From Penicillus capitatus (Eukaryota; Plantae; Chlorophyta), in the NCBI GenBank assembly GCA_965649825.1, contig OZ287703.1:524113-588112 (forward strand): 64,000 bases of DNA. The letters are read 5' to 3'. The translations under genes and the position numbers were made by a program. Under the pieces are notes generated by a model, which saw only the letters and a program-made list of their open reading frames with translations, had not been told where the DNA came from and ran no database searches. How positions within the stretch are numbered: position 1 is the stretch's first letter; each line of letters starts with the position of its first letter. Below are positions 3-55,100 of this stretch, piece after piece.

Positions 3-3000
3 ATCGTTCAGCTATGCAGAAACCTCGGAGGACCACTTTCAGAATATTTTAAAGACATTTCAGAAAAAGAGGAGAAGATTGTGAAATACTTCTGTCAAAA
101 TCCAGACAGACTGATCTCACAGACAAAGGGATTCATATCGCACTCCACGTTCACAGACTGGAAATCGAGAAAAGCCTTTATCAAAGATATGTGCTCTGTT
201 CTGGACGCCGTGTTTTGCATTCTTGATGTGCAGTTCAGAAACCGCAATCAAGAATTCGAGCGCATCAGAGAGCTTTTTCAGAAGACCTCTCAGATCAAGC
301 ATCTTCTGTGCTGTTTCTTTCCTTTGGAGAAAGAGGCTTTTGGAAAGGGAGCCAGTGTCTTGGGGGATTGCTTGAGTCGCAGCAAAGATCGCGCTGTCAG
401 GTACAATCTTCAGAAGAGGCTGTCGGAAGTCATCTGCGAGGCGGACACCAAGCTCTCTTGTTCCATCGTCAGGTTGATGAGGAGTGCAGATGCATCGACA
501 GCTGAGAGGAACAGAACTGGTATTGCTTTTGCGTTGAGCGCACTGGACTGGAAGACCACTCTGCTTCTCCCTGAAAGCTTGCTGGTCTCTGCACATGAAG
601 GTTTCTGTGGCTTAGAGATCCTGGATATCCAGAGGAAGTTCAGCAGAATGAGAATCTTGGAGGAAGTGTGCCAGTTACTTGCCGGGTTGTCACTTCAGAG
701 TAATGAAGGCTCGTCTAGCATAATTAAAAGTGCCGCGGAGACAGGCTATCGAGTAGTCCAACAGTTGACGCTGGGTGTGAGGCAAAAAACAGTGAACCTG
801 GGACAGAAAGCAATGAGTTTCTTTAGAAGAACGAACTCAAATTCTTCGGGTCCATCGACGTCAGATGCACATGAAACCGAAGAACACGATGGAAATGTCG
901 AGTTGGTGCACGCCGCCGCGGAACGATTGGATCCCATACTGCAATCATCAGATAGCAGCATGGTATTGTTCGATGAATTAAACACTGCAGTTGAATTCCA
1001 CAATGACATCATGTCTTACCTGCTTGAAGATAGGAGGAGAAACAAGAATGCTGCATTGACAAGAAGCATTAAAAAATGCGGCGAGCTTCTTGATCGTCTC
1101 CGTTGCTCTTCCCAGAGCATTGCTAAGAGTGAATTCTGCCTACCCTGGATTGCTCTTTTCGAGTCTTCAGTCAAAATCGACGTCCCATACAAGGTTGTGA
1201 GACGCTCTCAAGAAAACTTGCAGAGGGAGATCTTTGAGGAAGAAGGTTCCACGAGTGCTGCACTTCTGGTTGGCGAACTCGACCTAGGCACTTGCCTGTC
1301 TGAGCTGGTCTCCCTTGTACTCTTCGAGAAAGAAGCATCTGGTGCTGACTATGAGAAGACACGTGTGAGTGTGCTCCACTACACATGGAGTGAAGAAAGC
1401 TCATCTAACAGAAAGTGGATCGAACAATGGATGCAGAAACATGAAAACACCTACACCTTCTCTTTCTCTGACAAGAAACTGTTACCTGTCGACTCTCTTC
1501 CCAGACACCGTCTTTCGAGACTAGGCATTACGATTATTGCGTGTCTCTCCACTTTGGCGATTCATGGAAAAGACGGTGGAGCAGCGGGAAAGAGAGCCAG
1601 TGATGTGAAGCAACGATTCATCTCCGGTCTGGAGAAGCAGATGACTTCTTACTTGAGCGAAGTAGAGCTTTGGTCGAATAAGGAAGATGATAACTTGTTC
1701 CATCACCTGGTTCAACTGGATGCAAGCCTTCTTCGCAGTCAGAGGCAAGGACTAACTGCCACCAGGAGAGAATTGAGTGGATTTCTTCGGGCATTCTCCG
1801 ATACGAAGCTATCGATCGAAAAGTCGAAGATAGAAGAGACGCTTGATGCCATAAAGGAAAAACTGCTGTCGTCTGGATGGCAATCGACATCAATTGCCTA
1901 CAGCTTCAGGAACTTGATGGTAAAACTGGCGGATTACCCTGTGCAAGAAATAACCTTATGCCTGAAAGGGCTTCTTCGACAAGCAGAATCCAGATTTGGC
2001 GATTACTTCCTTGCCATGGACATGATTGCCCCAGTTTTGAAGCTCAAGGAACTCATGACAGAGTACGCAGCAGAATGTCTTGATGCTAACGATTCGAGCG
2101 TCTGGAAGAAGTGCAACGATCTGTGTTACTTTGTTTCAGAGGTCGTTAAGTACTTCATCGACTTTTTGATTGTGAAAGATGACAAAATGGAGCTCAACAG
2201 AGCAAAACCTCTTGAGGATTTCGATCAGTGGCATGAAGCTCTAGATAAGCTCATAGCTGAACTGGAGATTCCTGCGAGTCTATTGCAAGAGAACGACCTT
2301 GAAAACATCTTCTTAAAACTGAAGAATAAATACAAAAAGCAATTGAAGGAAGAAAACAGAGAAGCAAACTTTGCAAGGACAGGCCTTCTCGGTATTCAAG
2401 CTAAAGAAGGCTCTACTGACGGATCCATTGTGCCTGAATCTAAGGCCGAGATTCAGGCGAGCAAAGTGGCAGGCCTAAAAAGCGGATTCCAAAATCTCTG
2501 GAAGAAAGCGAAGAACCAATCTCAGCCGGCAACGTTTGTCATGCAAGAGGCAATAAAGGCTGTTCAGGTACTGGATCGTTTGAGAGGAGATGAACTGAAC
2601 GACATCACTCTCGCGAGATATCAAAATAGATTACAAAATCTCCGAATAGAGTTAGACAAGTCGCAACTGGAAGAGATTAGCAACAGAAAAACAACAATAT
2701 CAAACGAGCTCGAGGATCTTCTGTCGAAGAGGCCGAATTGCATGAACACTGCCGATTTCTCATTTGCGCACCAGGACCCCGAAAGATGCAGCTCATCTGA
2801 GGATCAGCAATTTCAGACACAACTGCGCCAGTTGGAGGAAGCCGTTTCCACAAAGTCAAGCACAAAGGAAGAAATCGAGTACTTGATGCATGTGGCATCC
2901 AACTATCAGAAGCATTCACTGTTGCAGCAAGCACTCGAGGTTCTCTGCCAATGCTGCAAGCCGCAAAACACAGAAGAGGGCAGCCGAGAGTTAAGAGAAC

Positions 3001-6000
3001 TGTCGGGTTTGCACATCTTCTCTGATCAACTCACCAATTGCTTGGCGTTTGAAGCAGACCGAGTTTCATACAATGAGCTGATGAACTGTGCAGTTGCTGA
3101 ACTATCCCAAATGCGAGCACAGTATCTGGTCGAAGAGTATTATGATCTGTTGGTTGGGTGGAAGTCCGGAAAAGTGGGGAGATCTCTGAAAGCCGTTGTG
3201 GATCTGTGTTCTGCTGAACGCTTCTCAATGCTGCATGCCAATACAACATTGGAGGAAATAGATGGTTGCATTAAACAGCTGCAGAAATGTTTGGCGTCGT
3301 TGACAGCCTTGAGTGAGAGTGGCCTCTGTTTCGCAAGCCCGAGTCTCTCCGTGGAAGACGTTGCTGTTCTTTTTTCAGCCAGTCCTGATTTCTTGCGCAG
3401 TTTCCTGCTGAATCCAGTAAGAACCAGCGAGGAAGACTCTGTCCCTGTGGAATTTGATTCCTCAGCAAACCAGCAGGGAGGGCTCCTGTCAATGCTGGCC
3501 TATCAACAGGAAGATGGCTCTTTGCTTCCAGTTTTCAATAGATCGTCTGGTGCAGACAGATTCCTGAAAGCTATGAAGAATGTCGTTGTCGATGAATGGG
3601 GAGAGAATGTCAGTCAAGATGAAGATGATCTTGCTGTGCAAGAAATCTTTGTTGCCTTTCACTTTGTCCTGATGTCTTTCGTATTTTCGAGACAAGAATC
3701 CAGTCATTTGGAATCGACTATCAAATTGGCGCCTTCTGAACCATCACAGAAGAAAATGAATGACCTAGAAGCACTCATCGGTCGTTGTCAAGAGAGTATT
3801 GATAATGACCGAACTCGACTTTCACAGAAAGGACTTGAACAAGAGAGGGGCACATCACGGCTTCGACGAGTGGAGGAAAGTAACGTAAAGAGGCATATTG
3901 ACAAAATCCAAGACGAAATGGAGAGAAAGCAAGAGGAACTGGCACAAGCAAGGGAAGAAGCAGACTCGCGTCGATCTGAAATTTGTCACTTCCTGACGAG
4001 GTCGCTACAAGATTTACTGGCGAAGGCTTTGCAGTGTTTCTGCAAAATTGTGAGATCGAACACACTAGAATTACTTTTGAGGGACGGTAAAGCGGTGTCA
4101 ATGAAAACTCCGTATTCATTGTGCAAGTCCGTCGTCCACGAAATCTGGAATTCCACATGCAAGAGAAGAGATGCAAGTTATGAAGCCAAGGAAGAATTCG
4201 AGCAATGGCAGCAGTCGTACACTGAGTTCTGTGAAGAACACTTGGCACGGTTGTCTAGCGAAGATCCACTAAGAAAGGCTGCCGAGATTCTGTGCAAGTG
4301 TGCATTCATTGGAAACCAGCGTACACTTCAGCTCATGTCTTCCGCGTCCAAATCTCTCACCATACTTGATACTTCGTTGATAAGCGCCGGGGAAAAGGCA
4401 AAGATCCTTGTGGAGAGGCTTACGGACATGTGCATCAATGACTTCGGCAATGAAACTGTGATAGAAGAATTGTCTGAAGACCTGCTGAGTTTGGAACACA
4501 AATGCAGAAGCCTTGGAGAGGAATGTGAGGCAAATGATGCCATTTGCCTTGATCTGGCTTACCTTAGAAACTTGATTCTGCACTCTGTCGGTTGCTGCTG
4601 TTCTTATGCCCACAGAATGCATCCAATGAACTGGTATGAAGATACACTTCTGCCAAGGTTGGCGGAATCTGTGAAGGAGACGGTCCTTCTTTCGATGCCA
4701 TCTTCTGATGAAGAAGAGTTAAAGGCAGAGATGAAATTGCTTCCATGCTGTTGGGCAAGCCACACGATGTCGCTGCAAACCAGTATCGTCGAAGACACTC
4801 TTGTGAATCCCTTCCGACTCATATACATCCTTGAACAGTTTTTTGCTGAGAGTGCTCCACTTTATCAGTCAGTTTCCTATGTTGGAAAGCACTTCATTGA
4901 CGGGGTTCTGGAACTAAAAAACAAACTGGGCGACGTTTCTCCGACAAACAATGTTCCCATCCTTACCTCAGTCGAGTGTCAGAATCTCGATCTCCTTGTA
5001 ACGCAGCTGCTGGAGATGTGCGAGGAATCGCTTCCTGCAATGACAGCAGAGCAGACACACCAGAGATTCGCCAAGCTTTCGAAGAAGACCCTAAAATTGA
5101 CCAAAGTGATGATCCAAACAAGGAAAGACCCAAGAGCTTACATGGCAGGTTACTTGGGAAGAGTTTGTGAGCAGTGGTGGTACGAGGCCACATCCATGTG
5201 TCTACAGAAGCTCCCGGCAGAACATGAATATGCCGTCGAAACGCTCAGTCAAAGAATCTCCGACACTGGATCCGATGTGACTGCTCTGCAAGGTCTCTTG
5301 CAGTTGTCCGATTTCAGAGATCTCGGCAAACTAAGGGAAATCCTTCGCAATGAAGGAATGGATCTTGCATCTGCCAAACTCAGTGACCAGCAGATGAGCT
5401 ACCTTCAAGTCTTTTCTTCTGTCTTGAGTGAACTTCCTTTCTGTGCAAGACCAAGACTGTTGCATAACTGGCAAATGTGTCAAACATTTCCAAGTGCCAG
5501 AATTCCTATCCAACAGTATGATAAGCTCTTGATGGCACACAGAGGTCTACTCAGGACACATGTGCCGAAGATCCTCCGCTTAAAAAGTGCAGTTGATAAA
5601 GAAACTGAAATGGTCATCAAAAAGGCTTGCAGTGTGCCGCATCACTTGTGCAGTGGAATTGGTCAGGATGTTGCAAAACTTTTGCAAAGATTGCAGTCTG
5701 ATATCCAAGAGGTGGTTGAGAATGCAGATACCCTTAACGAAGAATCTGCTTCAGCACGCAGAGACTACAATAAGAGCGTTGCTTCATTCCTTGAAGAGCG
5801 CCATAAGAAAAGAGAACGAACTCAGCAAAACTTGTGGCAACGGGTTCGTTCTCTGACACAACGCCGACAAGATCTTTTCCCAGAACTAGCAGAAACTGCG
5901 AGAGATCTTTGTTCGCATTATTCTGACCTCTGGAGGGTGGCTAGTCGTTGTTTCAAACATGAAGGAATTTCTGACTGGCATATGCAGGAGAGCAATGGAA

Positions 6001-9000
6001 TTTTAGACTTAAGCAGATCGCTAAATGATGTACTGCAGAAGCAGCAAGTCCTTTATCAAGGAAAACACGTCGCCGATTGTATCAAACTTGCAAGATATAA
6101 ACTGAAAAGAGTTGTTACCCAGTTGGACATTTTGTCTCTGGATCTGGATTCTTTTCTCCGGTTCGAAGACGCAATGCTCCAGATCGAAGTATCCGAAGGA
6201 GGCACAGGGGAAGTAGTTTCTGTGCGTTGTGAAGATGAGTTAAAAAAGCTGCTGCCCATCTCCTACGCTGTCGCAGATATAGCGCGCTTTAAGCTTAGAC
6301 TGGGATTCACAGGAAAAGACAGAAAGGAGTTCGTTAGAAAGTTCAAGTTGAGAGACATGGACAAACCCGTAACTTTTCAAGTCGGCCGGTTCAAATCTGG
6401 GAATAAGAAAACCATTGTGAGCTTCCATGCCATTAAGAGAACGACGATCGTTGGAAGCGATGCTTCTCTGCTGTCAGAAGCATCCTGCTCAGAATCCTGT
6501 TCAGACCCTTTGAATGACTTGTCAGCAAGAATGCACAGTCTCCTTGCAGATTACGAAAATCATTATGAGGAACTGCAGAAGAACATTCGACAGAAAAATG
6601 ATGCCGAGAAGGAAGAGAAGGAAGTATCTGCCCATTTAGAAACAAAGAAATCCGAACGGATTTCCATCGAGACAAGTTCGCATACGCGCATCATCGAGCA
6701 GTGGAATGGTATCCTTGGAGAGATTGTAGTTTCAGTACATAAGGCACAATCCGACCTGATGACCGCAAGAAGACCTCAGACTGTCAATTTGATCAACAAA
6801 GAAAATGAAGACGGCTTGAAGAGAATTAACGACGCAATGCAAAAAATGCAGGAATTGAATTTTGATGAGAGAAAATTGTCTGTTGTGGAATTCGACTATG
6901 CTGGCGAAAAACTGTCCTTCGTGTGGACTTCGGATATGCGATTGGCTTTCATGCAGATGAAGAAATGTGCGGACGACATGCGGCGGCTAGGGGAAAGGAG
7001 TCTTGAACTGTTATTTGCTGCAGCTCTTCTTGAGTTGTTCCAGTCCAGTCTTACGATAGTCTCGAAGAAAGACTTAATCAACCTTGAAAGGGCACTGCGA
7101 GAGTGGAGAGACATACTGGGAGACAGTCCCATGTCACTCAATCAACAAGAAGCCATTGCCTTCAAAGCTGAAAACCGTTGCCGCTCTGCATTGTCGCTTG
7201 CCGATGCCAGAGTCCAATGCATGATGTGCTTCGAGTATATCAGAGAAGAACATGAAAGAATTATTCTTTTAAACAGGAGAGACAATCTTTTGCTTCCAGG
7301 GACCAAACTGCACCACAGCGCCAAGCTCATTGTCACGCAGTCGGACACAGGGATCTGCATACTTGACCCCAGACATAACAGTATTGATTTTGGAACACAT
7401 CTGTACGCTGCAGATGACAAGAAGGCTGGATCGAGGGCACACGTGTGTATTGTGGAAGTGGTGAACCGTACCGCTTCGACGATGATTGTCTCAGTGGATC
7501 CCGTGAAAGGGTCATCTAATGGGTTCGCTGTTCTTGCCCCGAGTAGGGTCCGTCTCTATGGGAGATCGACTCATCAGTTTTCGTTCCGCATCAGTGACAA
7601 GGCAGTTGGAAGAATCTGTGAGCGTTGGAGAATCGAATCGCCTGAAACAAAACTGAATGATTTCTTCGAGCTTTGCGCAAACATCCAGAGACTGGCTGTT
7701 CAGCTCAGTGCAGAGGAGATGGATTTTGGAGTCCTGCTGGCGAGCTCACAACGACAGAAGCGCAAGATCTTCATCAGGAATGTGACAGACCTGCCCTTGT
7801 TGATCAAGAGCCAGATCCAATCCGACAATACCCGTTGCACACTCTCCATGTCGCCAGAGAAGATGTTGTTGCTGCCAAGAGAAAAACAATCTCTGGAATT
7901 CACACTGAAACCCAGTGCCACTGAAGAGAAGGTCGAATCCACTGTCGTCATCGGAGCTGTGCAGAGCTTTAAGTACTTGAAGCTGAAAGCGAAAATCAGT
8001 CGACCAAGATATGCGTTCTTGAATGAAATGCGCAAAGAATTCGATGCTTTGTATGAGATGAAAGCTGTGAAAAAGGGCAAGAAAGCCACAGGTTGCCTCA
8101 GTGTGAAGAACGAAGGGGATGTTCCAGTCGTTTTTAACATCGACTCAAAATCATATGCATTGAAGATTAAACCCTCTGCTGGAAGTGTACCTGTTGGCAG
8201 TGAAATTCCAGTAAACTTGAGGATGAGATGTCCTGACAACTCAGATGTCCTCAGGATTCAGGCAACCGTGTCTGTAAAGGGATGCCAACAAAGACAGCTG
8301 ACGATCAGTGGAAGGTGGATAGATCCCATTCCCACTTTCACCAAGAAGAATGTTGAATTCAAGACTCTGACAGAGCAGCTTGTGCATATGGTAAAGAAGG
8401 ATGAGAGATCGCTGGAGCTCACTGCTCGAAACAAGCTCATCAACAAGGATGACATTCCCGTTACTGTCTATCCACCAAAAAGTGATGACTTCACCTTTAA
8501 TCAGCCCCACTACAGCTTTGAACGAAAGGGAGAGATCGATGTTGAAATGAAGTGGACAGTGAGACGGCTCAAGAAGCAAAAGCACACTGTGACCTTCCTC
8601 ACAGACACAAAAAAGAAACTGTCTTTCAAAGTGCATCTTTCATTGACAGTCGGGAAGCTCGAGATCACTCCAACGAGATGGGTGCGACTAAATTCAGTAA
8701 AACCCGGAGAAACCATGCGAAGAGATATAAGGATCAATACTGATCATCATCAGTTTTCCATTCTCAACAAAGCCCCCCAATCCGAGCTGATCGAGACCCT
8801 TTCACTGGCGGAACTTCATAATGGATGCCCGAAGAAAGATCAGAAGCCCTGGCTGCTTGGATCAGATGACATGTCCACAGTCTTTCGCTCGTCGAAGCAG
8901 TTTGAAATCTGTGTGAAAGCAAAAGAAGGGACAGGCTGGATAGTGGAAGACTTGGCCTTCCAGACAGAACAGGCCGTTTTCGTTCACGAAGACCCGGAGA

Positions 9001-12000
9001 GATGTCAGTTGATGCAGCAGAAGTTAACGATCATGGCTCCTGTGTCGGCCACATCAAATGCATTAGCCAATCTGATGCAATCACTCAAGAAATCTGGTGG
9101 GTACGTGCTAGTAGGCAAGTATACAGCCTTCTGCCTTCCAAATCTAGAGATTCTGAGCGAAATGAGCTCTTCTCCGTCCACAGCACAGTCCTTTCTTCTG
9201 ATGATACTGTGCGAAGTCGAAATCCTCCAGAAGGAGTGGAAGTTGACAACAGAACTAGCACGTCGTATTCTCGGCAGCGATCCCGACGATGCAGTCTCGC
9301 TCTGCGCTCGTCACTTGAAGCACTTGGAACAATCACCAAGAGGGAAGGCTGGCCCATCCTCTGATCTTGCAGACTACTTTGGGAATCTCAAAGATCACTT
9401 CGAGAAGAGAGGTCACGACGACATGTCCGACATATGCATTCCTGTGGCTGCTGTCTCGAATGTTCCGGTCAATATCCAAGCTGTGGCTCAGGCGATGTAC
9501 ATGCTGTTGCATGCAGACTGCACAGAGGAGCAACAGTGGAAAGCCGCTGTCGCTGTGATGAAGACAACCATTCCTGATGCCTTTAGTGCCACTCAGTTTG
9601 ACAACACGTGCGAGGCCATTGCGGAGTTGCTTGATAATCAAGAATCGACGCTTTGCGACATATTGACTCTGTTGAAGAGTTTGATGCTCTCTGATGATGA
9701 GGAAATCGCTTCTTTTGGATTCACCACAAGCATTATCGAGAGTATCCTAAAAACCGATGCTGGCTCAAGTGTTGACACAGTCATTGCAGATTTGCTTCCA
9801 GAAGATCGCCAGCACAGAGAATTCATAATGCAATCCTTATTGCTGAACAAAGATAACAGAAAGGACACGTTGCTGTCTCTTGTCGGCAACCGTATGAGGG
9901 ACTCAGTGAAGCAATTGTGCTTTGGTGATCCCGAGGCTATCGTCACAGGATTCTGTCGTCTTGTGAAGGAAGACGAGAACCAGATCAATTGCAACATGAT
10001 GCGAGATCTAGTCAGAGGGTTGTCTGAAACGGGTAACCAAGAAAAGAGACCACTGACTAGACATCATGGCGATTCTCCCAGCGAAAAAGCAAAGAAGAAG
10101 ATTGAGCCAATACTTCAGGGTGCTCAACTGGAATCTGTGTGCGATCCAATCTGTGCTCTTCATAGATGCGAGAGTGGAACAGAAAGGAATCACAACGTCC
10201 GGAGGGTTGTCGTGGAAACGCTCTTTGGTGTCTTCCCTCGTCTTCCTGCTGGTCGCCACGAACTTCTGAGGAAGATCAAGTCGGCTGCCTTGAGGATATC
10301 TGATGGATTCTATCCGCCAAGCTCTCGGAAGAAGGCGGCGGACGTAATAGAAAAAGAACTTGAGTTTGTGGAAGTGAAGCATCGCTCGAAGCTGAGAGAC
10401 TTGATGATGCAGTGGATCCAGCTGAAGCCACGCGACGTTGGCATTGATCTTATGCTGAAACCGTTGATAGAGACGCTGCGAGAACTAATACCAGTGGATG
10501 AGGGCACGAGCTCTGAGCCATCTCGTGTTGATCTTCAGAGCATCGAAGAATCGCTGATCGAGGCATTGACCAGACTGGATCCTGTGGCCATTTCTCACAC
10601 AACACATCCTCACGATCTGCTTTCGAAAGTCGTCAGCTTTATTGCCGTGTTGAATAAGAATTTCCCAGAGAAGGTAGTCGAGCTCGCAGATAAGCTCTCT
10701 TCTCTGCAGATGGGTCCAACAAAGGAAACAGCAATACGCGCTTGCGGACCAATCTCTGAAGAACTATCGACAGACGCATTTAAAACAGTACTGGATCTTT
10801 TGGAAGAAGATCTTGATGATGAAAATCTTGAGAAAACGATCCTACATCTCATTCTGCCGCAGCAAATTACTGAGGCTTTTGACACTCTCGTCGAATCTTG
10901 GTCTGATGTTGATTCAGACGTGAATGGAGAAGAATTGCTAAAGAAGATCGAAGAAATCAGCGAACCGGCTGTGATGTCCGCCTTTATGCTTGTTGGCGAC
11001 GTGCTGAAAGCAAAGAACTCGGTCACACACATGGACGAATCACAGATGGAGTCCATCGAAGGCCTTCTTAAAATCAAGAAGCTCTTCGATTCGCTTTCCG
11101 CTCTGGGTTGTTGGGAGAAGAGAGAGAAGAGTCAAGCAGCTTGGAACATTCTCCTGTCTGCAAGTGCCATTGGACACAAAGCCGAACTGACATTTGAAGG
11201 CCACTGTCTGGTCAAGATGTCATTGCTGCTGTCCCTGGCCCAGTTCTACGGAAAAGAACATTGGAAGGAACGAGAATCACCATCCTGTGAAGATGACAGA
11301 TGTCTGAAGCTTGAAATCGCTGATGTGCCAGAGGAGTCGCCTTCCGAAGACAGTGGTGATGAAGAAGCAGAATGTGAGGAAATCGCATCAAGAGACGAGG
11401 AGAAGATACCTGCAGACGAAAACGAAGCAACTGCCGTTTCAGAAGATGGCGAGTGGCACTGGCTGTTGGAAAATTTCGAAGTACCGGAGGATCAGCTTGC
11501 ATCCCTAAGAAACGAAAACTCAGGAGAGACGGAGATGTCAGCTACCGAAAGTGGATCGACTGTTCAAGAAGATGACGTCAGTGTTGAGAGCAGCATTGGA
11601 TACATGGAGAAGCTCGCCAAAGTCGAAGGCATTCTCGAAGCAGTGATGAAGAGCGTAGATAATACATCAGCGTCACCCAGTGAAGACTCGTCACTCAGAG
11701 CTCTCACATTCGATCACATCGTGGATAGCATCGCAAAAGTGCAAGCAGCTGCAGACTCTTGGAATGAGGTATTCGAAGAGGCAGTTCGTCATTCCCATAT
11801 TCCAAAGAAAAAAGAAGACAAGAATGCTGATAGCCGAGTCGTATGCGCAGGGCTGTCCCTCATCTCTCAAATTCAGTTCTTCAAACGATACTTGGAGCGC
11901 TGCACTCTCTTTGAGATTCCGGGATTTGTGAAGGATGCGCTTGACGGCATTGTGCAACATCTGAATGCCATCCCCAAGAGCAACTCGCTAGCAGAGTTTG

Positions 12001-15000
12001 ACAAGATCCTCAAAGAGTTTGGCGCGATGAGTGTCGCGAAAGGACGCACAACAGAAGACTTCCCATTGCCATCACGGCAAGGGATTCCTTTTCAAACTGA
12101 AAAGAGTAGTCCCTGCGGAGACGAAAACCAACGAGCACGCGGCCATTCCTCTTCTTGTGCTGAAACAACAAGTAATGCGGAGGATGCCATGGTAGTCGAT
12201 ACCACACACAGAGGCTTTCTCCAGGAACTGAAAAACATAGTTTCGAGTTGCAGTTTTCAGTCTATGTCGGCAGTGAGACTGCAAAGTGTGGAAGGCCAAA
12301 AGATTGTTCTGCAGGCGGGTAAGGAATTGCAGTCTGGGAGATTTCAAGAAAGGGAAACAAAAGTGCAATCGTCCGTGATGGAAGACAGGAAGATTAAAGA
12401 ATGCAGCAAGATCAAGCTTCCTTCTGTGATTAAGGGAAGCACACATCGATGTGAGCAAGCTAGACAATTCAGTCAGAATAAGGGCAGTGCAGCTAAAAAA
12501 GATCAGGGATTTGATTTCTTCGCAGATACTGCAGAGGATGGGAGAATGGAAACATTTCAAGCATATTTCGATATTGATGAAAAAGCAATGCCTCATAGTG
12601 TCAGAGATGCTGATCTGGCAGAAATCTACAAAGACACTACTATTACAAGGGCTGATGTTGAGAGGATAGAACCAAACGATCCAGTCTCGGTTGACAGTCC
12701 CCATCCCCCACCTGACAGATGGACTTACCGTTTGCTTATTAAAAGCAAACCATTTGTGCGTTTTCTGGTGGAAGTCCTTCACATGTGGGAAGCTCACTTT
12801 GAGAGATTCTATAGATCGACAGCCGAGAAACACAAAATTGAGTGGTGCATTCTTGTTGACAATTCAGGATCGATGATCACCAAAGATATCGAGATGACAG
12901 AGGCTCTTGTTCTTGTGATGGAGACACTGAGGCGACTAGAGCAGCCGTTTGCCGTTGCTCGGTTTGGAGACCGGAAGTCTCAACAGATGCTGAAGATGAT
13001 GAACGAACCCTTCACGCAGCTTATTGGGCAGAAGATTCTTGAATCTTTCTCTTTCGACGAAGGCACTTATCCTGCTTCAGCTGTGAGGCATGTGGCTGAG
13101 AAGGTTTGGCCAAACTGCTTGTCCGAGAGCGACAGACTGCAGTGTCACCGAGTGATGCTTTTGATCATGGATGGACTGACACAAGAAAGATCTCCAGAAG
13201 ACTACACATCCATCTGCGACGAGAGAGAATTCGAACTTGTTGTCTTGAACTTGAAAGACGAAGCGCAGAAGGAGATTATGAGCCAGATTGAAGGGTTGTG
13301 GAGTAATGCTGCCTCTTTTTATGAAGTGCTGGACGTGCAATCAGTTGACCTTTTGCCGCAGTTGTTGGCTGGACTCATGATTCAGTACATGAAAAACACA
13401 CTCTCAAATATAGAGAAGAACAGATATCAGCTACGCGGTATTGAACAGCCAGGTGTCCAGGCTTGTTGTTTCGAAGACGTGAAGCTCAGCGTGGATGAAT
13501 CTGTGCTGTCATCAGATCTCAAGAAGCAATGTCTTCCTAGACTGCCTGGAGACTTCAGCAAGAAGAGCTTCTTCGACTGTGGATGCGAGACTGATGGAAT
13601 CCCGTATGCAATTGAGATGCGAAATCTGTTGAGCACAGACCTGGACCTTGATGGTGTTGCACTGGATCATGTTGAGAGAGAGCTTCTCGAGTTGCATCAA
13701 AGTCTACAGGTCCTACCAGAAAACAAGGATCATTTAAAGGAAGCTGAGATTGCTTGGATGAAAGCCGAAGAGTGGTTGAGTGTGGAGATTGCACATATGG
13801 CGGAAGCACTCGAAGGATTTCTCCCACAGAATCGCTTCACGAGGAAGAGGGCCGACATTCAGGGTCCATCCATCCATCTTCCAGGATTCATCAAGCACAT
13901 TGCGACTCAAGGCAACGAGAAGAAGATCTTCGCGAACAAGAAGGGAGGAGGGAAATCTGAGTACTCTGTGGCTGTCCTCCTGGACATCTCTGCGTCGATG
14001 GCGCAGGGTAGAAAGCGTCCATGTGCACTGCAAACAGTTGTGATGCTGATCAGTGCTTTGAAGCAGATGAACATCGAAGACTTCTCAGTCATTCTGTTCG
14101 GTGGCGGCATCTATCCGATCAAACTGCCAGACGATGTCTGGGAAGCATCTTCTATGGCCTTGCTCTTCTCTGCAGTCTTGCATAGAAACGAGCTCTCTAC
14201 CATGGATGCAGACGCTCTGCTCTTCGCTGCGCAGCTGCTCGATCAGAGCAGTGTCAGAGGACCAAAGAAGATGTTTGTCGTGACAGATGGATACGGGAGT
14301 TCGGGAGTTAGGTTGGCAGGCGTGCTCCACAAGATTGAAGAAGATCTGGGAGTCGACGTGTTGGCGATGGGCGTCGGTCCAGAGGAGTTCTTTGTCAAGA
14401 AATGCTATCCCAAGTGGATTACTGCCGCGTTGCCTCAGATGGTGCCGGATGCATTGGAAAGCATGTGCGACAGAATGGAGGGCGCAGCCAAACTGCAGCA
14501 GACGACCCAAGAGGACAACGCCGAGTCGCAGACGCTTGCTTATATAAAAGAAGGAGCGGCCGAAACTGTAGAAGAAGTTCTGAGAAACAGGGAGATCTTG
14601 TTTCCTGATTTACTGAAGGATATGAAGACAGAACGAGAAGCCAGGCTTCGGCGAGGGAACAATGCTTCTACTTTCGAAGTGGACATCTGTTTTGTCATTG
14701 ACTGCACGGGATCCATGAAGAGTTGGATAGATGCCGTGAAGCAGCAGATAGAGGTAAGAATGAAGAACTAATGTTCGATCTGAGATGTATGTTCACTATA
14801 GTTCGTCGCTGAGCACATATCGCATAAGATTGAAGAGAAGCATCCCAAAATAGAACTGAAGCTCCGCTTTGCAACACTCGCGTATAAGGATTTTGGAGAT
14901 GACGACAGTTTGATTCTTTATCCATTCACCGACAGCGTACAAGAGTTACAATACGCTCTTCAAGAATTAACGGCGGAAGGCGGTTCCGACTTACCAGAGG

Positions 15001-16101
15001 ATGTGCTGGGAGCTTTGAAGTATGCAGCTGACCTTGACGATTGGCAGAGCAACATTCGATTCTGTGTACTGATTGGCGATGCACCTGGACACGGAAGAGA
15101 TCTCAACGACCTCGATGACGACAGGTTTCTAAACAATTTGTCTTTGTACACAATGTGAGACATTTGTGATCAGGTACCCAGATGGAGATCCAACTGGACT
15201 GACGGCAAGCAGTGTCATGGCGGATCTGAAAGCAAAGGAGATCCACTTACTCTTCTGCAGGATAACGCACAAAACAGACAAGATGGTCAACGAATTTGCG
15301 AGACACTACAATGACGGCGTGAAGTTTGAGTTGACATTGAAGGATGTGTTTGGAGACTGCACAGTATGCACCTCGGTATACTTGAGACTGAATGTCTTAA
15401 TTGTGTGCATTTCTGCCTGTGTAGGCTGATGTTCAGACAGGCTTTCACACCGTGTTGTGTCTGGACGAATCTGGGTCAATGGAAGGACAACCTTGGCAAG
15501 ATGTCTGCAACGCTTTTCAGCAATTCTTAGCGAAGAGAGTGCTCAATCAGGCGACATCTGATCTTGTCAGCGTCATTCAATTCGATCACACGGCCAACAT
15601 TGTGATGGAAGGAGTACCACTTCAATCAAATCTGGGACTTCTGGATTACCATGGCGGAGGAACACATTTCATTCCCCCGCTTATTACTGCATTAGAAATT
15701 CACCTGCGCAATCAGACTGCTCATACGCCCGTTCTCATTTTTATGTCAGATGGAGAGGCTGCGGATCCGCACGATGAAATCATATATGTAATGAGACAGC
15801 TCGTTCAATACTGCCCATCACTAGATGTACACACAGTAGGATTTGGACATGGTGCATCACACTCTCGATTACAAGTACGTAACATTTTTACATGGTGTCA
15901 GATTGTTGACCATTCGACTGTTGTCAGGAAATGGCAGCCGAGGTTGGGGGACAGTATCACCAGGCTATCACAGGAATCGATTTGTCAAACGTCTTTTCGG
16001 ACATTTCGGATAACTTGAATACAACAGATGCACTTACTTCTCAGTTTGGAAAAGTGATCGGCGACATGGTTTCCTCTGCCATCATTCTTGGACATCTCTG
16101 A
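3..16101 (+). CDS. Giant multi-VWA protein, paralogue A (5'-partial, >=5,295 aa): helical/coiled-coil region, C2-like domain, ASH/PapD-like Ig array, acidic spacer, four VWA/MIDAS domains
   Basis: The frame is open from nt 3 (IVQLCRNLGG...) with no stop to 14753. Exons are 3-14753, 14802-15124, 15174-15363, 15425-15874 and 15928-16101, joined by GT-AG introns of 48, 49, 61 and 53 nt. MIDAS motifs are EWCILVDNSGS, VAVLLDISAS, DICFVIDCTGS and VLCLDESGS, each with a downstream acidic partner motif (MDG, TDG, GDAP, SDG). It is colinear with the gene at 52194-63999. Confidence 0.88.
13911..14223 (+). repeat. Left arm of a ~94% identical inverted repeat (VWA2 core); partner at 54081-54393
   Basis: Manual codon-by-codon comparison with the reverse complement of 54081-54393 gave 20 mismatches in 313 nt and 4 amino-acid changes. 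Confidence 0.9.
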
Positions 16102-24366: not shown

Positions 24367-25594
24367 TCATCCGCCTTGTGCATAATCGTATCTGACGTCA
24401 CATCACACTTTAATCAAAGAGTGACCGGACAGGGGGCCTACTCAATGGATGGGATGAGCGCTGTAATGAACTTTAGAAAGACTAAGAGATAACTACGGGA
24501 CACGGAATGAAGAGTGAGAATACGAGACAGTAGATGAGTGAGGTGGCTTACTGATCTACTGGGCAATTCTTTCCGCTCGCTTCCATGGTATTTAAGAGCT
24601 CCTTCATGACTTGAGCATGTCGACATGGATGTATTGATACGGCATGGATGTTCTCGTGGGGATGGGGATCCCATGTCAACGTCAGTCCTGCGTGTTCAGG
24701 ACTCACATCCGCACAGATCTGCAGACACAGCAGCTGTCACATCACCAACTCCGTGCATCGTCTTCTCCACCTGTTCCGATGTCAATGGGGAGAGACTGGC
24801 ATCGAAACCGACGAGCCAGAAACGTGGGACTTTGTACACCAAGTCATAGGTAATGTACAGATCGTAGAGTCTTCGGTTCTGTACCTGTGGGGGTAGAGCG
24901 CCCTGATAAAATGCAGTCCATCTCAAAAGTGCCAATAAAGACATGTGCCTCTTACTGGGTCATCTTCGACGTCCTCGCCAATTTCGTCTGCGGCTACTTC
25001 AGGAACGTCGATATCTCGATGCTGTATGTTTGATACCGTCCCGGGGCACACCCAATCTCCTGTCACATCACTTAATCAGCAACGGCCTTGCGTGTTTACC
25101 AATATCCCATACCATCATTCTGTTCTTCCTCGTTATCGCCGGTGGATTGTAACTGACTGACAGAATTGCACGGAGCTGAACAGCATGGACACCATCAGTA
25201 TCTCTCGATCCCTACCCACGCACCCACACAACATCACCTTTTCGCGTGACGAGGCACTGCTTCTCTCTGCCTCCTAAATAACCCTTCTGCTTCGAAGCAA
25301 CACCTCCATACCTAATAACCGTCCATCTGGTCGACCTTCACCGAACCCTCCCTGCTCACCATTCCCACGAAGGAAATGCCTGGACCAGATAATCCCCTGC
25401 TTGGACAAACTCGGCTGGTGTCAACGTCTACAGTCACTCTTTTCCAAACCAGTACCGTAGACAGTGTCCAAACACACTCTCTGTTCTTTGAACTGCGAGA
25501 CAGTGGGGACCGGTGTCACAGAGGCGAGGAATTTCATGTACATATTGTGCATGCCATGCTTAACGCCGCCTGCCAGATTCGGCTGTGTGGACAT
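24367..25594 (-). CDS. ATG3: Autophagy E2-like enzyme ATG3
   Basis: N-terminal ...VTPVPTVSQFKEQRTLTPAEFVQAGDYLVQAFPSWEW, then KQCLVTRK, RLYDLYITYDLVYKVPRFWLVGFD, catalytic IHPCRHAQVMK and YLLVFLKFITALIPSIE|YDY. Confidence 0.92.
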
Positions 25595-25837
25595 CGTCGT
25601 TTTCTCGATCGAAAGCGTACACCCGTGTCAGAGCGTTTCGTGTGCGCCACTTTGTCGTACGGCCGCTTCGGAGTCTCTTCAGTCTCCCATCCTGTCCCAT
25701 CAAGGAGTGAAGTGTATAAATGACGTGTCCTTTGTGTCCAGTCGTTCTGCATCGGCGTCGAAATCGAGCAACGAAGTGACACACCGACTGTGCTGTTGCA
25801 ATCGGACGGCTCTGCGATTCTGTGTTGGATTGGAAGG

Positions 25838-27101
25838 ATGAATACTGTGTTGCTCGGCGACGACGGCGATGGTCATAAGGCACCGAATTCCAAACAGAAT
25901 GAAAACATTCGCGTTCACTGTGAAGCAGCAGACTGTGGAGCCATGCTGGAAGTAGACTGTTCTTCGTGATAGCCGCACTCGGGACATGAAGCAATGCTGT
26001 GCAGATTCGAGTTCCGAGTGGACAGTACTGTTCCTCCCTCATCGTGCGATGTGGAAATTGCCAGAGGTGGGAAGAGGGGAGATAGGCTTTGTGGAGTGCG
26101 TGTGTATGTTTTTTCAGGCTGTTGTCGGTATGGCTGAACAAAGGAGGACAACCGATGGTGCCGCATACGCCGCTTCTCAGCCAATCCGCTTTCTACGCGA
26201 GTGGATTTGGAGACAATGTGCATCCAGCTGCGATGTTCCTCGGCAACGGACAAGGAACGGTACTCCTACGGCGTACAGAGATGACGGTGTAAAAGTGTGA
26301 CTATGTCAGGTGTCCCATGACCAGTCGTCGCCCATAACGACAGTGCACTTGGCACGGCCGCCTCCACTGTCGCGCACACACGGGATGTCGTACGGGGAGA
26401 GAAAGGCGAGAAGAGTGAGATGAGTCGATAGAGATGGGAAGGAGTGAGTGTAGGCGGTGAGAGATGCAATGGTGAAGGTTCTATTGACGTCATCATGCGA
26501 CACAGCAACGACGACGGTTGGAAAAGACAGTACGGTAAGCGATGAGCTGCATCGGAAACCATAGTGTGATAATGGTGTGATGGGATGTGGCATTTTTCTG
26601 TACAGAGTGTGACAAACAGTAGTGTATTCAAGCCTGACATGGAGTATACCAAGAGGGGTGCTGGAGGCAAGATAAGAAAAGGTGAGTGCATTGAGGAGGG
26701 CATGCGTTTGAGTGTGGTTGTGTGGATAGAACGTCCTTTTCGCCAGACGTCTCCCTACAATCGCTTTATGAGGTGCTGTTATACACTGTGCAATGGCAGA
26801 GTGATGTAGTGCGAGATGATGATCTGCAGCCGAGAAGTGAAGCGGATCAAGGCAGAGAATCCAGAAATGGATCACCGAAAGGCTTTCAAAACGGCGGCCA
26901 GTAATGTATGGGGACATCTGTTACACTGCTTCGTGCAGAATTGAGTGTTTTCAGTGGGCCCGATCACCAACGGCGTGCCAAAGAGCTTTGATCAAGACGG
27001 AACAGCCGGATGGTGAAAAGACGGAACAGGTAGAATCGCCGATGAGTGTGACAGCATCCAGCCATGCCTTGTCGCTGCAAAGTACCTTATGGTCTAGCTG
27101 A
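25838..27101 (+). CDS. YABBY: YABBY-family transcription factor (C2C2 zinc finger plus HMG-like YABBY domain)
   Basis: Exons 25838-25951, 26005-26066 and 26118-26259 give IRVHCEAADCGAMLE|IRVPSGQYCSSLIVRCGNCQR|LLSVWL. Exons 26730-26772, 26830-26905 and 26955-27101 give ERPFRQTSPYNRFMS|REVKRIKAENPEMDHRKAFKTAASN|WARSP. Boundaries of the middle linker exons are less certain. Confidence 0.92.
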
Positions 27102-28187
27102 TGTGACAGCTTCAATGTCGGGTTTTAGGTGATGAGCCAACTGGATGGAATGCACTCAGAATCCAATCGCAAGAGAAAGAAATGTCCTGTCCATTGAACG
27201 CCTCGAAACACAAAGGAATCAAATGCGTCGCACAGGACTGAAATTCATTGACTCGATCTTACCATTCTATGGCATGCATTCATGCTTCGTTGTATTATGG
27301 CGCGACGGAGATTTCTCCGGGGCAATTGGACACCATTCATAGATTAGGTAGTCGTTAAAGCATGCAACCGTTTTTTGTTTTTGGTTATTTCTTTGTGGCC
27401 AACCTTCCCCCAGCAAACAATCGTGGTAGATCTAACTATCTATCAAGAACAGCCATTTCCGTTCGTGTCTCGACATGTGATATAAGATAAGAATGTCGAT
27501 ACCATAAACATGATTGCGTCTTAACGAATTGTATATACAAGCTCTAAGGATTACGCGTTTCAGACAATCGTTGTTATGAGCCAGTTAGTATGCAGCATGG
27601 AAACCTTCAATGGCGGAGGAGAAAACTGAGCCGTCTTGTGTCCGCAGTGGTTGTTCTGTTGTTTAACAATGTCCATTGTCTATTGCTTGCCTTGTTGTCG
27701 TATGTTCTGTGTTATGTGCTTAAAGATTGGTCTGTAATTGTACGTCTGTGTTTTTCTCGGGCACAAAACTGAAGCACCGAAAATTGTCCCATACTGTAAG
27801 AGCTTTTATAGATGACTTACTAATGGATGCCATACGTTTGTTGTGAGAATTCAACGAATCAAGTCTGTACAGATCACAACATCCTGGATGAAATCCAAAA
27901 GCCGAAAGATAGGAATGTGAACGGCCGTTTTTAATCGAACATTGCGAAACCGATCCCCCACGCTTAACGCTCGTTATGTAACGCGTTAGAGAGCACTCTA
28001 CTCCAAGAGAAATCTGTATACACACGATCAAGTAACGGTGCTGCACATGGACAACCTCATACTCGGCCTATCTAACAGCACGGTCGTTGCAAGCATGTGG
28101 ATACAGTTATTAAATTTGATGGAGAGAAGCTCGTTAGAATGGTAAGAAAAAATCGAGAAGGGTTCAAAGAGAGGTAAACAGCTACGT

Positions 28188-52193: not shown

Positions 52194-55100
52194 TCAAAGA
52201 TGTCCTGTAATGATAGCCGAAGCTACCATATCTCCAATCACTTTTCCGAATTTTGAGGCCAAAGCATCCGTTGCTGACGAACTGGCTGCAATGTTAACGA
52301 AAGCGGTCGATAGATCCACTCCCGTCATCGCTCTGTGATACTTTCCACCAACGATGGAAGCCATATCCTGAAAAGCACGAACGCCTCGGCCATTGAACAG
52401 TGAAGCTGCTGATAGTGCCGTTACCTTTAGAAGGTCATGTCGTGCAAGAGGTCCAAATCCGATTGTGTGGACGTTCATTGGGCCATAGCTGTTATAGATT
52501 TGTTCCATTCTACCAGGTATCCGTCTTTTACCGTCACCAGATGCTCCATCCGACATAAAGATGAAGACAGGAATCTCGTGCCTCTGTCGATAGGACAGGA
52601 CTTCTTCGGCAGCGTCCAGTGCAGGATGAAACTTTGTACCCCACTTCGGAATTGAAGACAGTCGCACATTCCCAGTCAACGGTTCTCTGATGCATGTTGT
52701 GTAGGCGTGATCATCAAACTCAATAAGGGTGATGACGTCTCTCTTTGACTGATCTTCTATTCGCTTATCTAGGAATTGCTGCAAGGCTTCCTTCAGATCT
52801 CTCCATCGTCCACCTTTCATGGACTTTGATTTGTCCAGACAAAACACAAAGTGGTAATGAAGTTGCGCATTATCCTGTCAAACAACTTTGTGAGAAACTG
52901 AGAGCGCAGGTCACGACGAACATACCGATGCATCGCCGAAGACGTCTTTGGAAATCAAATCAAATCGCCCATCTCTGTTGTAGTGTCTGGCAAAGCAACC
53001 GATCATTCTGTCCGTGTCAGGTGTGATTCTGCAGAAGAGGAGATGAATATCCTGTTCCATTAAATCCGCCATGAGACTTTCTGCTGTGATATGAGGATGA
53101 CCTTGAGGGTACCTATTGCAGAACCAGCATCAGCATTGGAAGTTTAGTGAATAGCTAGTCAGCTGGTCGAACCTGTCATCACTGCACGTGTTGAGTTCAT
53201 GTCCATGGCCAGGGGCATCGCCAATAAGCACACAGAATCGCACTTGGCTTTGCCAATCTTCCATCAGTGCAACAGCGTTCAGCGCTCCGAGCACATTTTC
53301 AGGCGTATCTGATCCGCCATATGCCGTCAGAGACGAAAGGAAAAGAGAAAGCCGCAGAGGATCTGAAGAGAATGGATGGATCTTTAGACGATTAACGTCT
53401 CCATAATCTCTGTAGGCCACCATGGCGAAACGGAACTCCAGTTCCAGATTTGTATATTCTTCTTTGAGTTTCTCGGAAACCATCGTCGCAATGCCCTGCA
53501 AAAATTAGAAGTGTATCATGTTCAATGCCGTCAGTCACCTAATCTGCTCTTACCTTAATCTGCTGTTTGGCAGCGTTTAGCCAGAACGACATAGAACCGG
53601 TGCAGTCCAGGGCAAAACAGATATCCACTGTTATGGCAGATGGCCTGTTGCCTCTTGTAAGCCGAGCTTCTCTTTCTGACTCCATCAACTGCAGTAAATC
53701 TGGAAAGACACCCTCTCTGTTCACCAGAACTTCTTCGAACGTATTCGCCGCTCCTTCTGGAACCAGCCCGACACTGAGCCAGTCGATGGTATCTTTCTGG
53801 TAAGTTCTCTGCATCCTTGCTGCATTCTCCATTCTATCTGTCAATGTCTCTAAGGCGTTTGGCACCAGTTGAGGCAACGCAGCCGTAATCCACTTGGGAT
53901 AACATTTTTTGATGAAGAACTCTTCTGGGCCAACACCCAATGCTGTCACATCCATTCCTGATTCGTCAAGTTCTTTCAATACTGCTGCCAGGCGAATGCC
54001 AGAACTTCCATACCCGTCTGTCACCACAAATATCTTCTTTGGTCCACGGACGCAGCTCTGATCAAGCATTTTCCCTGCAAAGAGCAGAGCATCTGCATCC
54101 ATACTGGAGAGCTCGTTTCGTTGCAGGACTGCAGAGAAGAGCAAGGCCATCGAAGGTGCTTCCCAGACATCGTCTGGCAGTTTGATCGGATAGATCCCAC
54201 CACCGAACAGAATGACTGAGAAGTCCTCGATGTTCATCTGCTTCAGAGCACTGATCAGCATCACAACTGTTTGCAGTGCACATGAACGCTTCCTACCCTG
54301 CGCCATCGACGCAGAGATGTCCAGCAGGACAGCCACAGAGTACTCGGACTTCCCTCCTCCTTTCTTGTTCGCGAAGATTTTCTTCTCGTTGCCTTTAGTG
54401 GCAATGTGCTTGATGAATCCAGGCAGATGGATGGATGGACCCTTGATGTCGGCCCTCTTTCTTGTAAAGCGATTCTGTGGGAGAAAGCCATCCAGTGCTT
54501 CCACCATGTGATCAATCTCTGCACTGAATCTCTCTGAAGCGTTGAGCCATGTGTCTTCAGTCGCTCGTAGCTGATCCCTCTTCTCTGTCTGTGTTTGCAA
54601 ACCTTGGATCTCGCCGTACAGATCTTCGTCCAAAACACTGTCCAGAGTCACATTCACGTGTTCCAAGGCAGCCGTTTCTGTTCCGAAAGGAATTCCGTCG
54701 GATGAGAATCCACAGTCAAAGAAACTTTCCTTCGGATAGCTTCCTGGCAAAGGCGGAAATGGTTGTTTTTCTAATTCTTTCAGGAGTATTCCTTCATCAA
54801 CATGCAGATTGGATCCAGAGAGGTCTGTTGCTTTCGGAGGATCCTGTTGGATAGTCGACAGCTGATTCCTGTTCTTCTCAATCTTCGAAAGCGTGTTCTC
54901 CATGTACTGAATCATGAGTCCAGCCACCAGCTTCGGCAGCAGATTGATGGATTCTATGTCCAGCACTTCATAGCAAGATGCAGCTTCACGCCACAAGTCT
55001 TCAATCTGGCTCATCATCTCTTTCTGCGCTCTGTCTTTCAGATTCAGGACAACAAGATCGATGTCTTTATCGTTGCAGACAGAAGTGTAATCCCGCGGAG

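Follow-up and report, generated by a model that had tools for sequence, protein, structure and literature searches.

From reading of the sequence and a three-frame translation of positions 25000-28000, a gene of nine exons was obtained at 25838-27101 on the forward strand of the window (the whole stretch of 64,000 nucleotides analysed here), with canonical GT...AG borders at all eight introns. The spliced coding sequence is an open reading frame (ORF) of 822 nt and encodes 273 amino acids. Its start codon, ATG at 25838-25840, is the first in-frame ATG downstream of a stop codon at 25721-25723, and the stop codon, TGA, is located at 27099-27101. The exon sizes range from 43 to 147 nt, and those of the introns from 48 to 71 nt. 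A zinc finger peptide, IRVHCEAADCGAMLEIRVPSGQYCSSLIVRCGNCQRLLSV, corresponds to aa 24-63 of the product, and a YABBY-domain peptide, RQTSPYNRFMSREVKRIKAENPEMDHRKAFKTAASNWARSP, to aa 190-230. Exon 1 (25838-25951, 114 nt) contains the start codon, an N-terminal tail and the first half of the finger, IRVHCEAADCGAMLE, with the first cysteine pair, C-EAAD-C (CX4C). Exon 2 (26005-26066, 62 nt) contains the second half, IRVPSGQYCSSLIVRCGNCQR, with the second pair, C-GN-C (CX2C), and exon 3 (26118-26259, 142 nt) begins with LLSV, the end of the finger, and continues into a variable linker. A conserved motif, SPITTVHLARPPPLSRTHG, is located in exon 4 (26310-26414, 105 nt). The probable exon 5 (26478-26534, 57 nt) encodes VLLTSSCDTATTTVGKDST and is preceded by a weak acceptor, gtgaag/G. 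Exon 6 (26606-26681, 76 nt) encodes more of the linker and the basic stretch KRGAGGKIRK ahead of the YABBY domain, in which GGKI(K/R)K is invariant in the alignment of the window protein and its relatives (alignment A1). The YABBY domain starts in exon 7 (26730-26772, 43 nt) with ERPFRQTSPYNRFM(S), has its core, REVKRIKAENPEMDHRKAFKTAASN, in exon 8 (26830-26905, 76 nt), and ends in exon 9 (26955-27101, 147 nt) with WARSPTACQ, which includes a clade-specific SPxxC extension and is followed by a variable tail and the TGA. All of these exons are on the forward strand. The sequence-only reading of this DNA had claimed that one gene encodes both domains and that the first knuckle is CX4C. Both claims agree with the gene model, which contains the two peptides quoted there.

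We infer the splicing of this gene from the splice signals, the conservation and the comparison with relatives that are just 46-50% identical. Exon 5 is the sole doubtful exon of the nine. Skipping it keeps the reading frame and gives 254 aa, and this shorter isoform is a possible product beside that of 273 aa. Two other arrangements were tried and rejected. An alternative exon 5 acceptor at 26507 shifts the frame into a stop codon, TGA, and a model without exons 4 and 5 is in frame, but the exon 4 motif that it removes is conserved in all relatives. The nearest TGTAA polyadenylation signal is 632 nt 3' of the stop codon, which is too distant to assign.

The gene was also said to be invisible in the ORF track, and indeed the sole ORFs of at least 130 aa over the locus are antisense, at 25560-26141 (193 aa), 26266-26703 (145 aa) and 26306-26917 (203 aa) on the reverse strand. 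In the recorded gene calls of a near-identical contig, L005 (ENA ERZ25074695, ctg340476_38x_l), the 203-aa antisense ORF is present and a YABBY-annotated product is absent. The 203-aa ORF gave no Pfam match. Antisense calls over eukaryotic genes with short exons look like a systematic mis-annotation in metagenome assemblies, and this locus is a clean case, in which ORF-based calling missed the gene and put antisense ORFs in its place.

A search of 5.8 billion proteins identified three relatives, P0001, P0002 and P0003. P0001 and P0002 are ORFs of 320 aa and 307 aa on Logan contigs of 1.2-1.4 kb. P0003 is on a JGI contig from a sample that we take to belong to a coral metatranscriptome series; its ORF really begins at nt 51 and encodes 282 aa, including the finger. 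The N-terminus MNTVLLG encoded by exon 1 aligns with MHDVLLG of P0001. In the contigs L001, L002 and L003, which are short and intron-free, the finger (CX4C...CX2C), the linker motif and the YABBY domain follow one another in a single uninterrupted frame. The motif, SP(L/I)T(K/T)VHLARPPPLSR in P0001, P0002 and the L003 ORF, corresponds to exon 4 of the window gene. L002 terminates in Illumina adapter. The simplest reading is that these three contigs are transcripts of related species. The sequence-only reading had named the joining of the finger exons to the YABBY-domain exons in one transcript as a point on which its proposal would stand or fall, and in these cDNA-like contigs of relatives the join is seen. 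The 3' UTRs of L002 (~1075-1100) and L003 (~990-1015) also have a conserved stretch in common, ctcaaatttagtttgccatcaaa. This could be an element with a regulatory role, or no more than a sign that the two species are closely related. Another relative's contig, L006 (Logan SRR33785046, 19 kb, 66% identical in the neighbouring COG6 gene), was scanned for YABBY-domain codons and contains none; its neighbourhood is rearranged, so that this absence carries no weight for or against the gene.

These contigs bear directly on the possibility that two separate genes lie at the locus, with exons 1-3 or 1-4 encoding a small zinc-ribbon protein and exons 6-9 a YABBY or HMG-like protein, and that their join is an artefact of the model. 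The NCBI annotation splits the homologue from Ostreobium quekettii in just this manner, into CAD7701044.1 and CAD7701043.1, and the linker and exon 5 evolve near-neutrally. However, in three independent intron-free contigs of relatives a single ORF spans the finger, the YABBY domain and the PPPLSR motif between them, and two domains are likewise joined in the EukProt model of the Ostreobium gene and in the proteins from Bryopsis, Chlamydomonas eustigma and Chloropicon. In addition, when exons 6-9 are translated from the exon 6 acceptor, the earliest ATG is codon 12, which bears no mark of a start codon, and the phases fit across the nine exons in two species. We therefore regard a pair of genes as improbable, and both domains are predicted to be on one polypeptide, finger first, from an in-frame nine-exon model that is also kept in an orthologous contig (L007, described below).

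The predicted protein was compared with Pfam. The YABBY profile (PF04690) matched aa 186-232 at 61.6 bits (cut-off, 28.6; E = 9.5e-17), and the YABBY_N profile (PF24868) scored 26.6 bits (cut-off, 28.6; E = 4.3e-6). The latter score falls 2 bits short, which fits the insertion of two residues in the first knuckle, and the YABBY_N matches recorded for the relatives P0001 and P0002 were likewise just "faint" and "weak". In a 27-member alignment of homologues, YABBY was matched by all members and YABBY_N by 25 of the 27, and C28, C33, C54 and C57 are invariant columns across these algal and plant-type proteins. Every residue that is invariant in the plant-type and algal proteins is kept in the window protein (the four cysteines, Y195, N196, E202, F219, A222, A223 and W226). 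The finger spacing is C-X4-C-X20-C-X2-C in place of the canonical C-X2-C-X20-C-X2-C. We read this as a clade-level variant, which is no bar to membership in the broad YABBY family and shuts the protein out of the seed-plant subfamilies.

A structural model was prepared with AlphaFold2 using the 27-sequence alignment as input. Two modules are modelled with confidence, a ribbon of four strands (aa 22-64, pLDDT 80-95) and a pair of long helices (194-209 and 215-228, pLDDT 92-98), and the remainder is disordered. Foldseek against the PDB gave nothing significant; the top entries were ZitP, a zinc finger, at E = 0.88 and several HMG boxes at E = 1-3, a list that fits the expected folds and is no evidence by itself. 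A sequence search of the PDB gave at most weak matches to the HMG boxes of TFAM (E = 0.16).

Since the YABBY domain is HMG-like, the protein might instead be a generic HMG-box chromatin protein that carries an unrelated zinc ribbon and stands outside the YABBY family. The weak HMG_box match, the TFAM boxes as best sequence matches in the PDB, the HMG boxes listed by Foldseek and the departure of CX4C from the canonical plant CX2C are all compatible with such a protein. HMG-box proteins (TFAM, HMGB, SOX) also bind DNA through a helical fold of about this size, with weak sequence and structural similarity to the domain found here. In contrast to the window protein, they have no N-terminal C4 ribbon, and the window model has two long helices and no clear three-helix L-shape. 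HMG_box (PF00505) reached 18.3 bits (cut-off, 25.4) and HMG_box_2 12.9 bits (cut-off, 22.4); both are under their own cut-offs, and the YABBY score is 43 bits above that of HMG_box. The finger matches YABBY_N (E = 4e-6), the N-to-C order is as in plants, and the residues invariant across the plant-type and algal proteins are all retained. This makes a generic HMG-box protein very improbable, and the assignment to YABBY proposed in the sequence-only reading, for which the Pfam comparison had been suggested as a check, holds.

The window is 100% identical to the contig ctg340373_30x_l of ENA ERZ25074695. L005, from the same assembly, is 99.2% identical over 21.5 kb (window 10191-31748; coverage, 38x as compared with 30x) and probably represents either the second haplotype or a strain living alongside. 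Its YABBY gene is intact and differs in three amino acids, which are confined to the tail. A contig of another assembly (ENA ERZ26696514; L004 and L007) is collinear with the window at 81-87% DNA identity, and L007 contains the orthologue of the YABBY gene from a related species at ~85% DNA identity. In L007, all 16 splice sites are kept and the frame is open through the nine exons. The exon 1 donor is changed from GTAGAC to GTGCAC with the splice site kept. The internal exon indels between the two genes are three, each of 3 nt (one in exon 4 and two in exon 9), and a further indel of 4 nt is found just ahead of the stop codon in exon 9; the intron indels are of 1, 4, 2 and 3 nt. The identity of the exons is 86.2% overall, slightly higher than that of the introns (82.8%), and reaches 95.3% in exon 7. 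The 5' flank at 25600-25837 is identical at 211 of 238 positions (88.7%), which exceeds the exon mean of 86.2% and the value of every intron apart from intron 7 (88.5%). A TATAAA sequence at 25715-25720 on the forward strand, 118 nt 5' of the ATG, is unchanged in L005 and L007 and is a possible TATA box.

The dN/dS values against L007 were 0.18 for the finger, 0.07 for the YABBY domain and 0.47 for the whole gene, and two wrong-frame controls gave 0.77 and 0.87. For the PPPLSR motif the value was 0 (no nonsynonymous and three synonymous changes). The region of aa 65-112, mostly the exon 3 linker, gave 0.45, and the C-terminal tail ~1.35. For aa 132-160, which comprise the tail of exon 4 and exon 5, the value of ~1.1 indicates no amino-acid constraint, and yet the frame and the splice sites of exon 5 are kept in L007. 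A decaying or unexpressed pseudogene that is outwardly intact would agree with the whole-gene value and with tails at ~1 or more, but is barely credible in view of the open frame that both haplotypes or strains and also a species at dS ~0.26 retain, the strong purifying selection on both domains and the motif, and the retention of all splice sites.

A profile search of 1.84 billion representative sequences gave 679 matches at E <= 1e-3 and 84 at E <= 1e-10, among them several proteins from named green algae. Bryopsis sp. KO-2023 has GMH40088.1 (BSKO_07992), a two-domain protein annotated as "hypothetical protein", and a second match, GMH35452.1, with the same annotation. Chlamydomonas eustigma has the two-domain GAX78539.1, named "YABBY protein C-terminal domain-containing protein" in UniRef, and Chloropicon primus has the two-domain QDZ21048.1, annotated as "YABBY protein". 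In Ostreobium quekettii, CAD7701044.1 contains the finger and CAD7701043.1 the YABBY domain, and the entry carries the UniRef YABBY-domain name. This homologue (P0231, P0324 and P0325 among our matches) is split by NCBI into two adjacent proteins and is one protein of 527 aa in EukProt (evm.model.scf_492.7). KAG7671518.1 from Nannochloris desiccata has no zinc finger as judged by the finger pattern and was excluded from the tree described below. Two departures from the common architecture were also observed. A Bryopsis paralogue, BSKO_03320 (P0158), keeps the first knuckle (VRVQCEAVDCGALLEV) and has lost the second cysteine pair, with a good YABBY domain, and P0160-P0164, from ENA and Logan contigs, have two to four tandem YABBY-like domains without a zinc finger, an architecture that is undescribed for YABBYs.

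A neighbour-joining tree was constructed from the finger and YABBY-domain alignments with 200 bootstraps, in which plant-type proteins were labelled by their canonical motif. The window protein falls within a clade of 100% bootstrap support together with Bryopsis, Ostreobium, C. eustigma and further sequences. Every member of this clade is CX4C, with the consensus C-E-A-x-D-C, and therefore the spacing characterises a clade of core chlorophytes and is no defect of the window gene. The first knuckle is CX2C in the Chloropicon-type proteins, in a marine-metagenome clade (P0210), which we suspect to be Mamiellophyceae, and in the plant-type proteins. Inside the CX4C clade, a (P)PPLSR-type linker motif and the extension NWA(K/R)SPxxC are common to Bryopsis, Ostreobium and the window group.

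The Bryopsis and Ostreobium proteins resemble the window protein in the finger (VRVQCEAxDC...VRCGNC), the PPLSR-type motif (LVQPPPLSR in Bryopsis), the YABBY domain and the extension after it, but they are only ~30-33% identical overall, are longer (392 and 527 aa) and have other tails. BSKO_07992 shares both finger introns with the window gene, the first at about the same position and the second after ...C..C.R, whereas the Bryopsis gene is without introns in the YABBY domain, where the window gene has two. Plant YABBY genes have introns in the finger and at ...AAKN/WAH.... QDZ21048.1 of Chloropicon primus and the P0210 group have the same two-domain arrangement, in which the finger precedes the YABBY domain, but they have the CX2C knuckle, are without the PPPLSR motif and SPxxC, and form separate clades in the tree. 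The seed-plant YABBYs (FIL/YAB3, YAB2, YAB5, INO and CRC) agree with the window protein in the two Pfam domains, in their order and in an invariant core of four cysteines and Y-N-x-F...E...AF..AA.NW. The plant consensus given in the sequence-only reading aligns directly with the window protein. They differ in the CX2C knuckle, the size (~180-250 aa), the shorter linker and the absence of the PPPLSR motif.

The host lineage was assessed from a neighbouring gene, a COG6 ORF of 563 aa located 4 kb upstream of the YABBY gene. Its best named match is from Bryopsis sp. KO-2023 (40% identity, 404 bits), followed by Chlorophyceae and Trebouxiophyceae at ~360-380 bits, with land plants lower; matches at 57-72% identity are on unannotated contigs and show that nearer relatives exist in such data. 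Since chlorophytes rank first among the named organisms, the host is a chlorophyte, in agreement with the green-algal host proposed in the sequence-only reading. The motifs and intron positions shared by the YABBY genes point towards Ulvophyceae near Bryopsidales.

From these results we conclude, with a probability of about 0.88, that the locus is an intact, selectively maintained nuclear gene for a YABBY transcription factor of a chlorophyte, probably ulvophycean, that belongs to a CX4C subclade of core chlorophytes. This subclade has an insertion of two residues in the first zinc knuckle (C-E-A-x-D-C). In the encoded protein, a zinc ribbon with four cysteines (aa 24-64) forms the N-terminal module and the YABBY domain, an HMG-like helix-loop-helix (aa 186-235), the C-terminal one. 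The linker that connects them is predicted to be largely disordered and has one strongly conserved short motif, VHLARPPPLSR. By analogy with plant YABBYs, the YABBY domain with the preceding basic stretch, KRGAGGKIRKERP, would bind DNA, the zinc ribbon would mediate dimerisation or self-association or the binding of partners, and the protein would regulate transcription in the nucleus. For the motif in the linker, a speculative but most likely role would be that of a site of partner docking or modification.

YABBYs are textbook regulators of leaf-blade (lamina outgrowth) and carpel development in plants. A wider proposal is that the CX4C YABBYs of core chlorophytes, which in the Bryopsis, Ostreobium and window group also have VHLARPPPLSR and SPxxC, are a functionally distinct, undescribed subfamily. 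Its altered zinc knuckle and linker motif would recruit partners other than those in plants, and it would control thallus morphogenesis or polarity in siphonous or macroscopic ulvophytes. We consider this unlikely; if true, it would be an independent use of a lamina-outgrowth factor in a second green lineage. RNAi has been reported in Bryopsis (PMC12961179), and BSKO_07992 is a concrete target for studying the role of a YABBY in a leafless organism.

Our literature search found no paper that pairs YABBY with Ulvophyceae, Bryopsis or Ostreobium. For algal YABBYs, reviews cite solely the Micromonas homologue (Worden et al. 2009; PMC8074164, PMC5622374), a 2025 paper treats predicted rhodophyte YABBYs (PMC12567131), and YABBY is absent from the main text of the TAPscan papers PMC11712027 and PMC5737466. 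The history of the family before land plants is usually reduced to a single Micromonas citation. Complete two-domain YABBYs are present across several chlorophyte lineages, i.e., Ulvophyceae, Chlorophyceae and Chloropicophyceae by named proteins, and a family member in Trebouxiophyceae is likely. This distribution, together with the common modified zinc knuckle, supports the view that YABBY arose before chlorophytes and streptophytes diverged and was lost many times afterwards. The sequence-only reading had held that a genuine chlorophyte YABBY would bear on the origin of the family. The gene is a genuine chlorophyte YABBY, but it adds little on that question, because the Chloropicon, C. eustigma, Ostreobium and Bryopsis proteins were already deposited and Micromonas is cited in reviews. 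The window gene is an unannotated addition to a family already in chlorophyte databases, and not a first. The new points are modest: a CX4C clade of core chlorophytes and the linker motif VHLARPPPLSR that goes with it. The literature search found no description of either.

Two giant intron-free ORFs were also observed at the ends of the window, paralogous and inverted relative to each other, at 81-14771 on the forward strand (4896 aa) and 53539-63924 on the reverse strand (3461 aa). Both encode an Ig domain of the HYDIN/CFA65/Cep192 type in the middle of the protein and a pair of VWA domains close to the C-terminus. The exact product of the 3461-aa ORF was looked up and gave no record. The 4896-aa ORF runs off the start of the window, and the gene calls of related contigs include products of more than 8100 aa. 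A small VWA_2 gene follows each giant ORF, at 15452-16018 on the forward strand and 52194-52847 on the reverse strand. Giant intron-free genes are unusual next to neighbours with many short introns.
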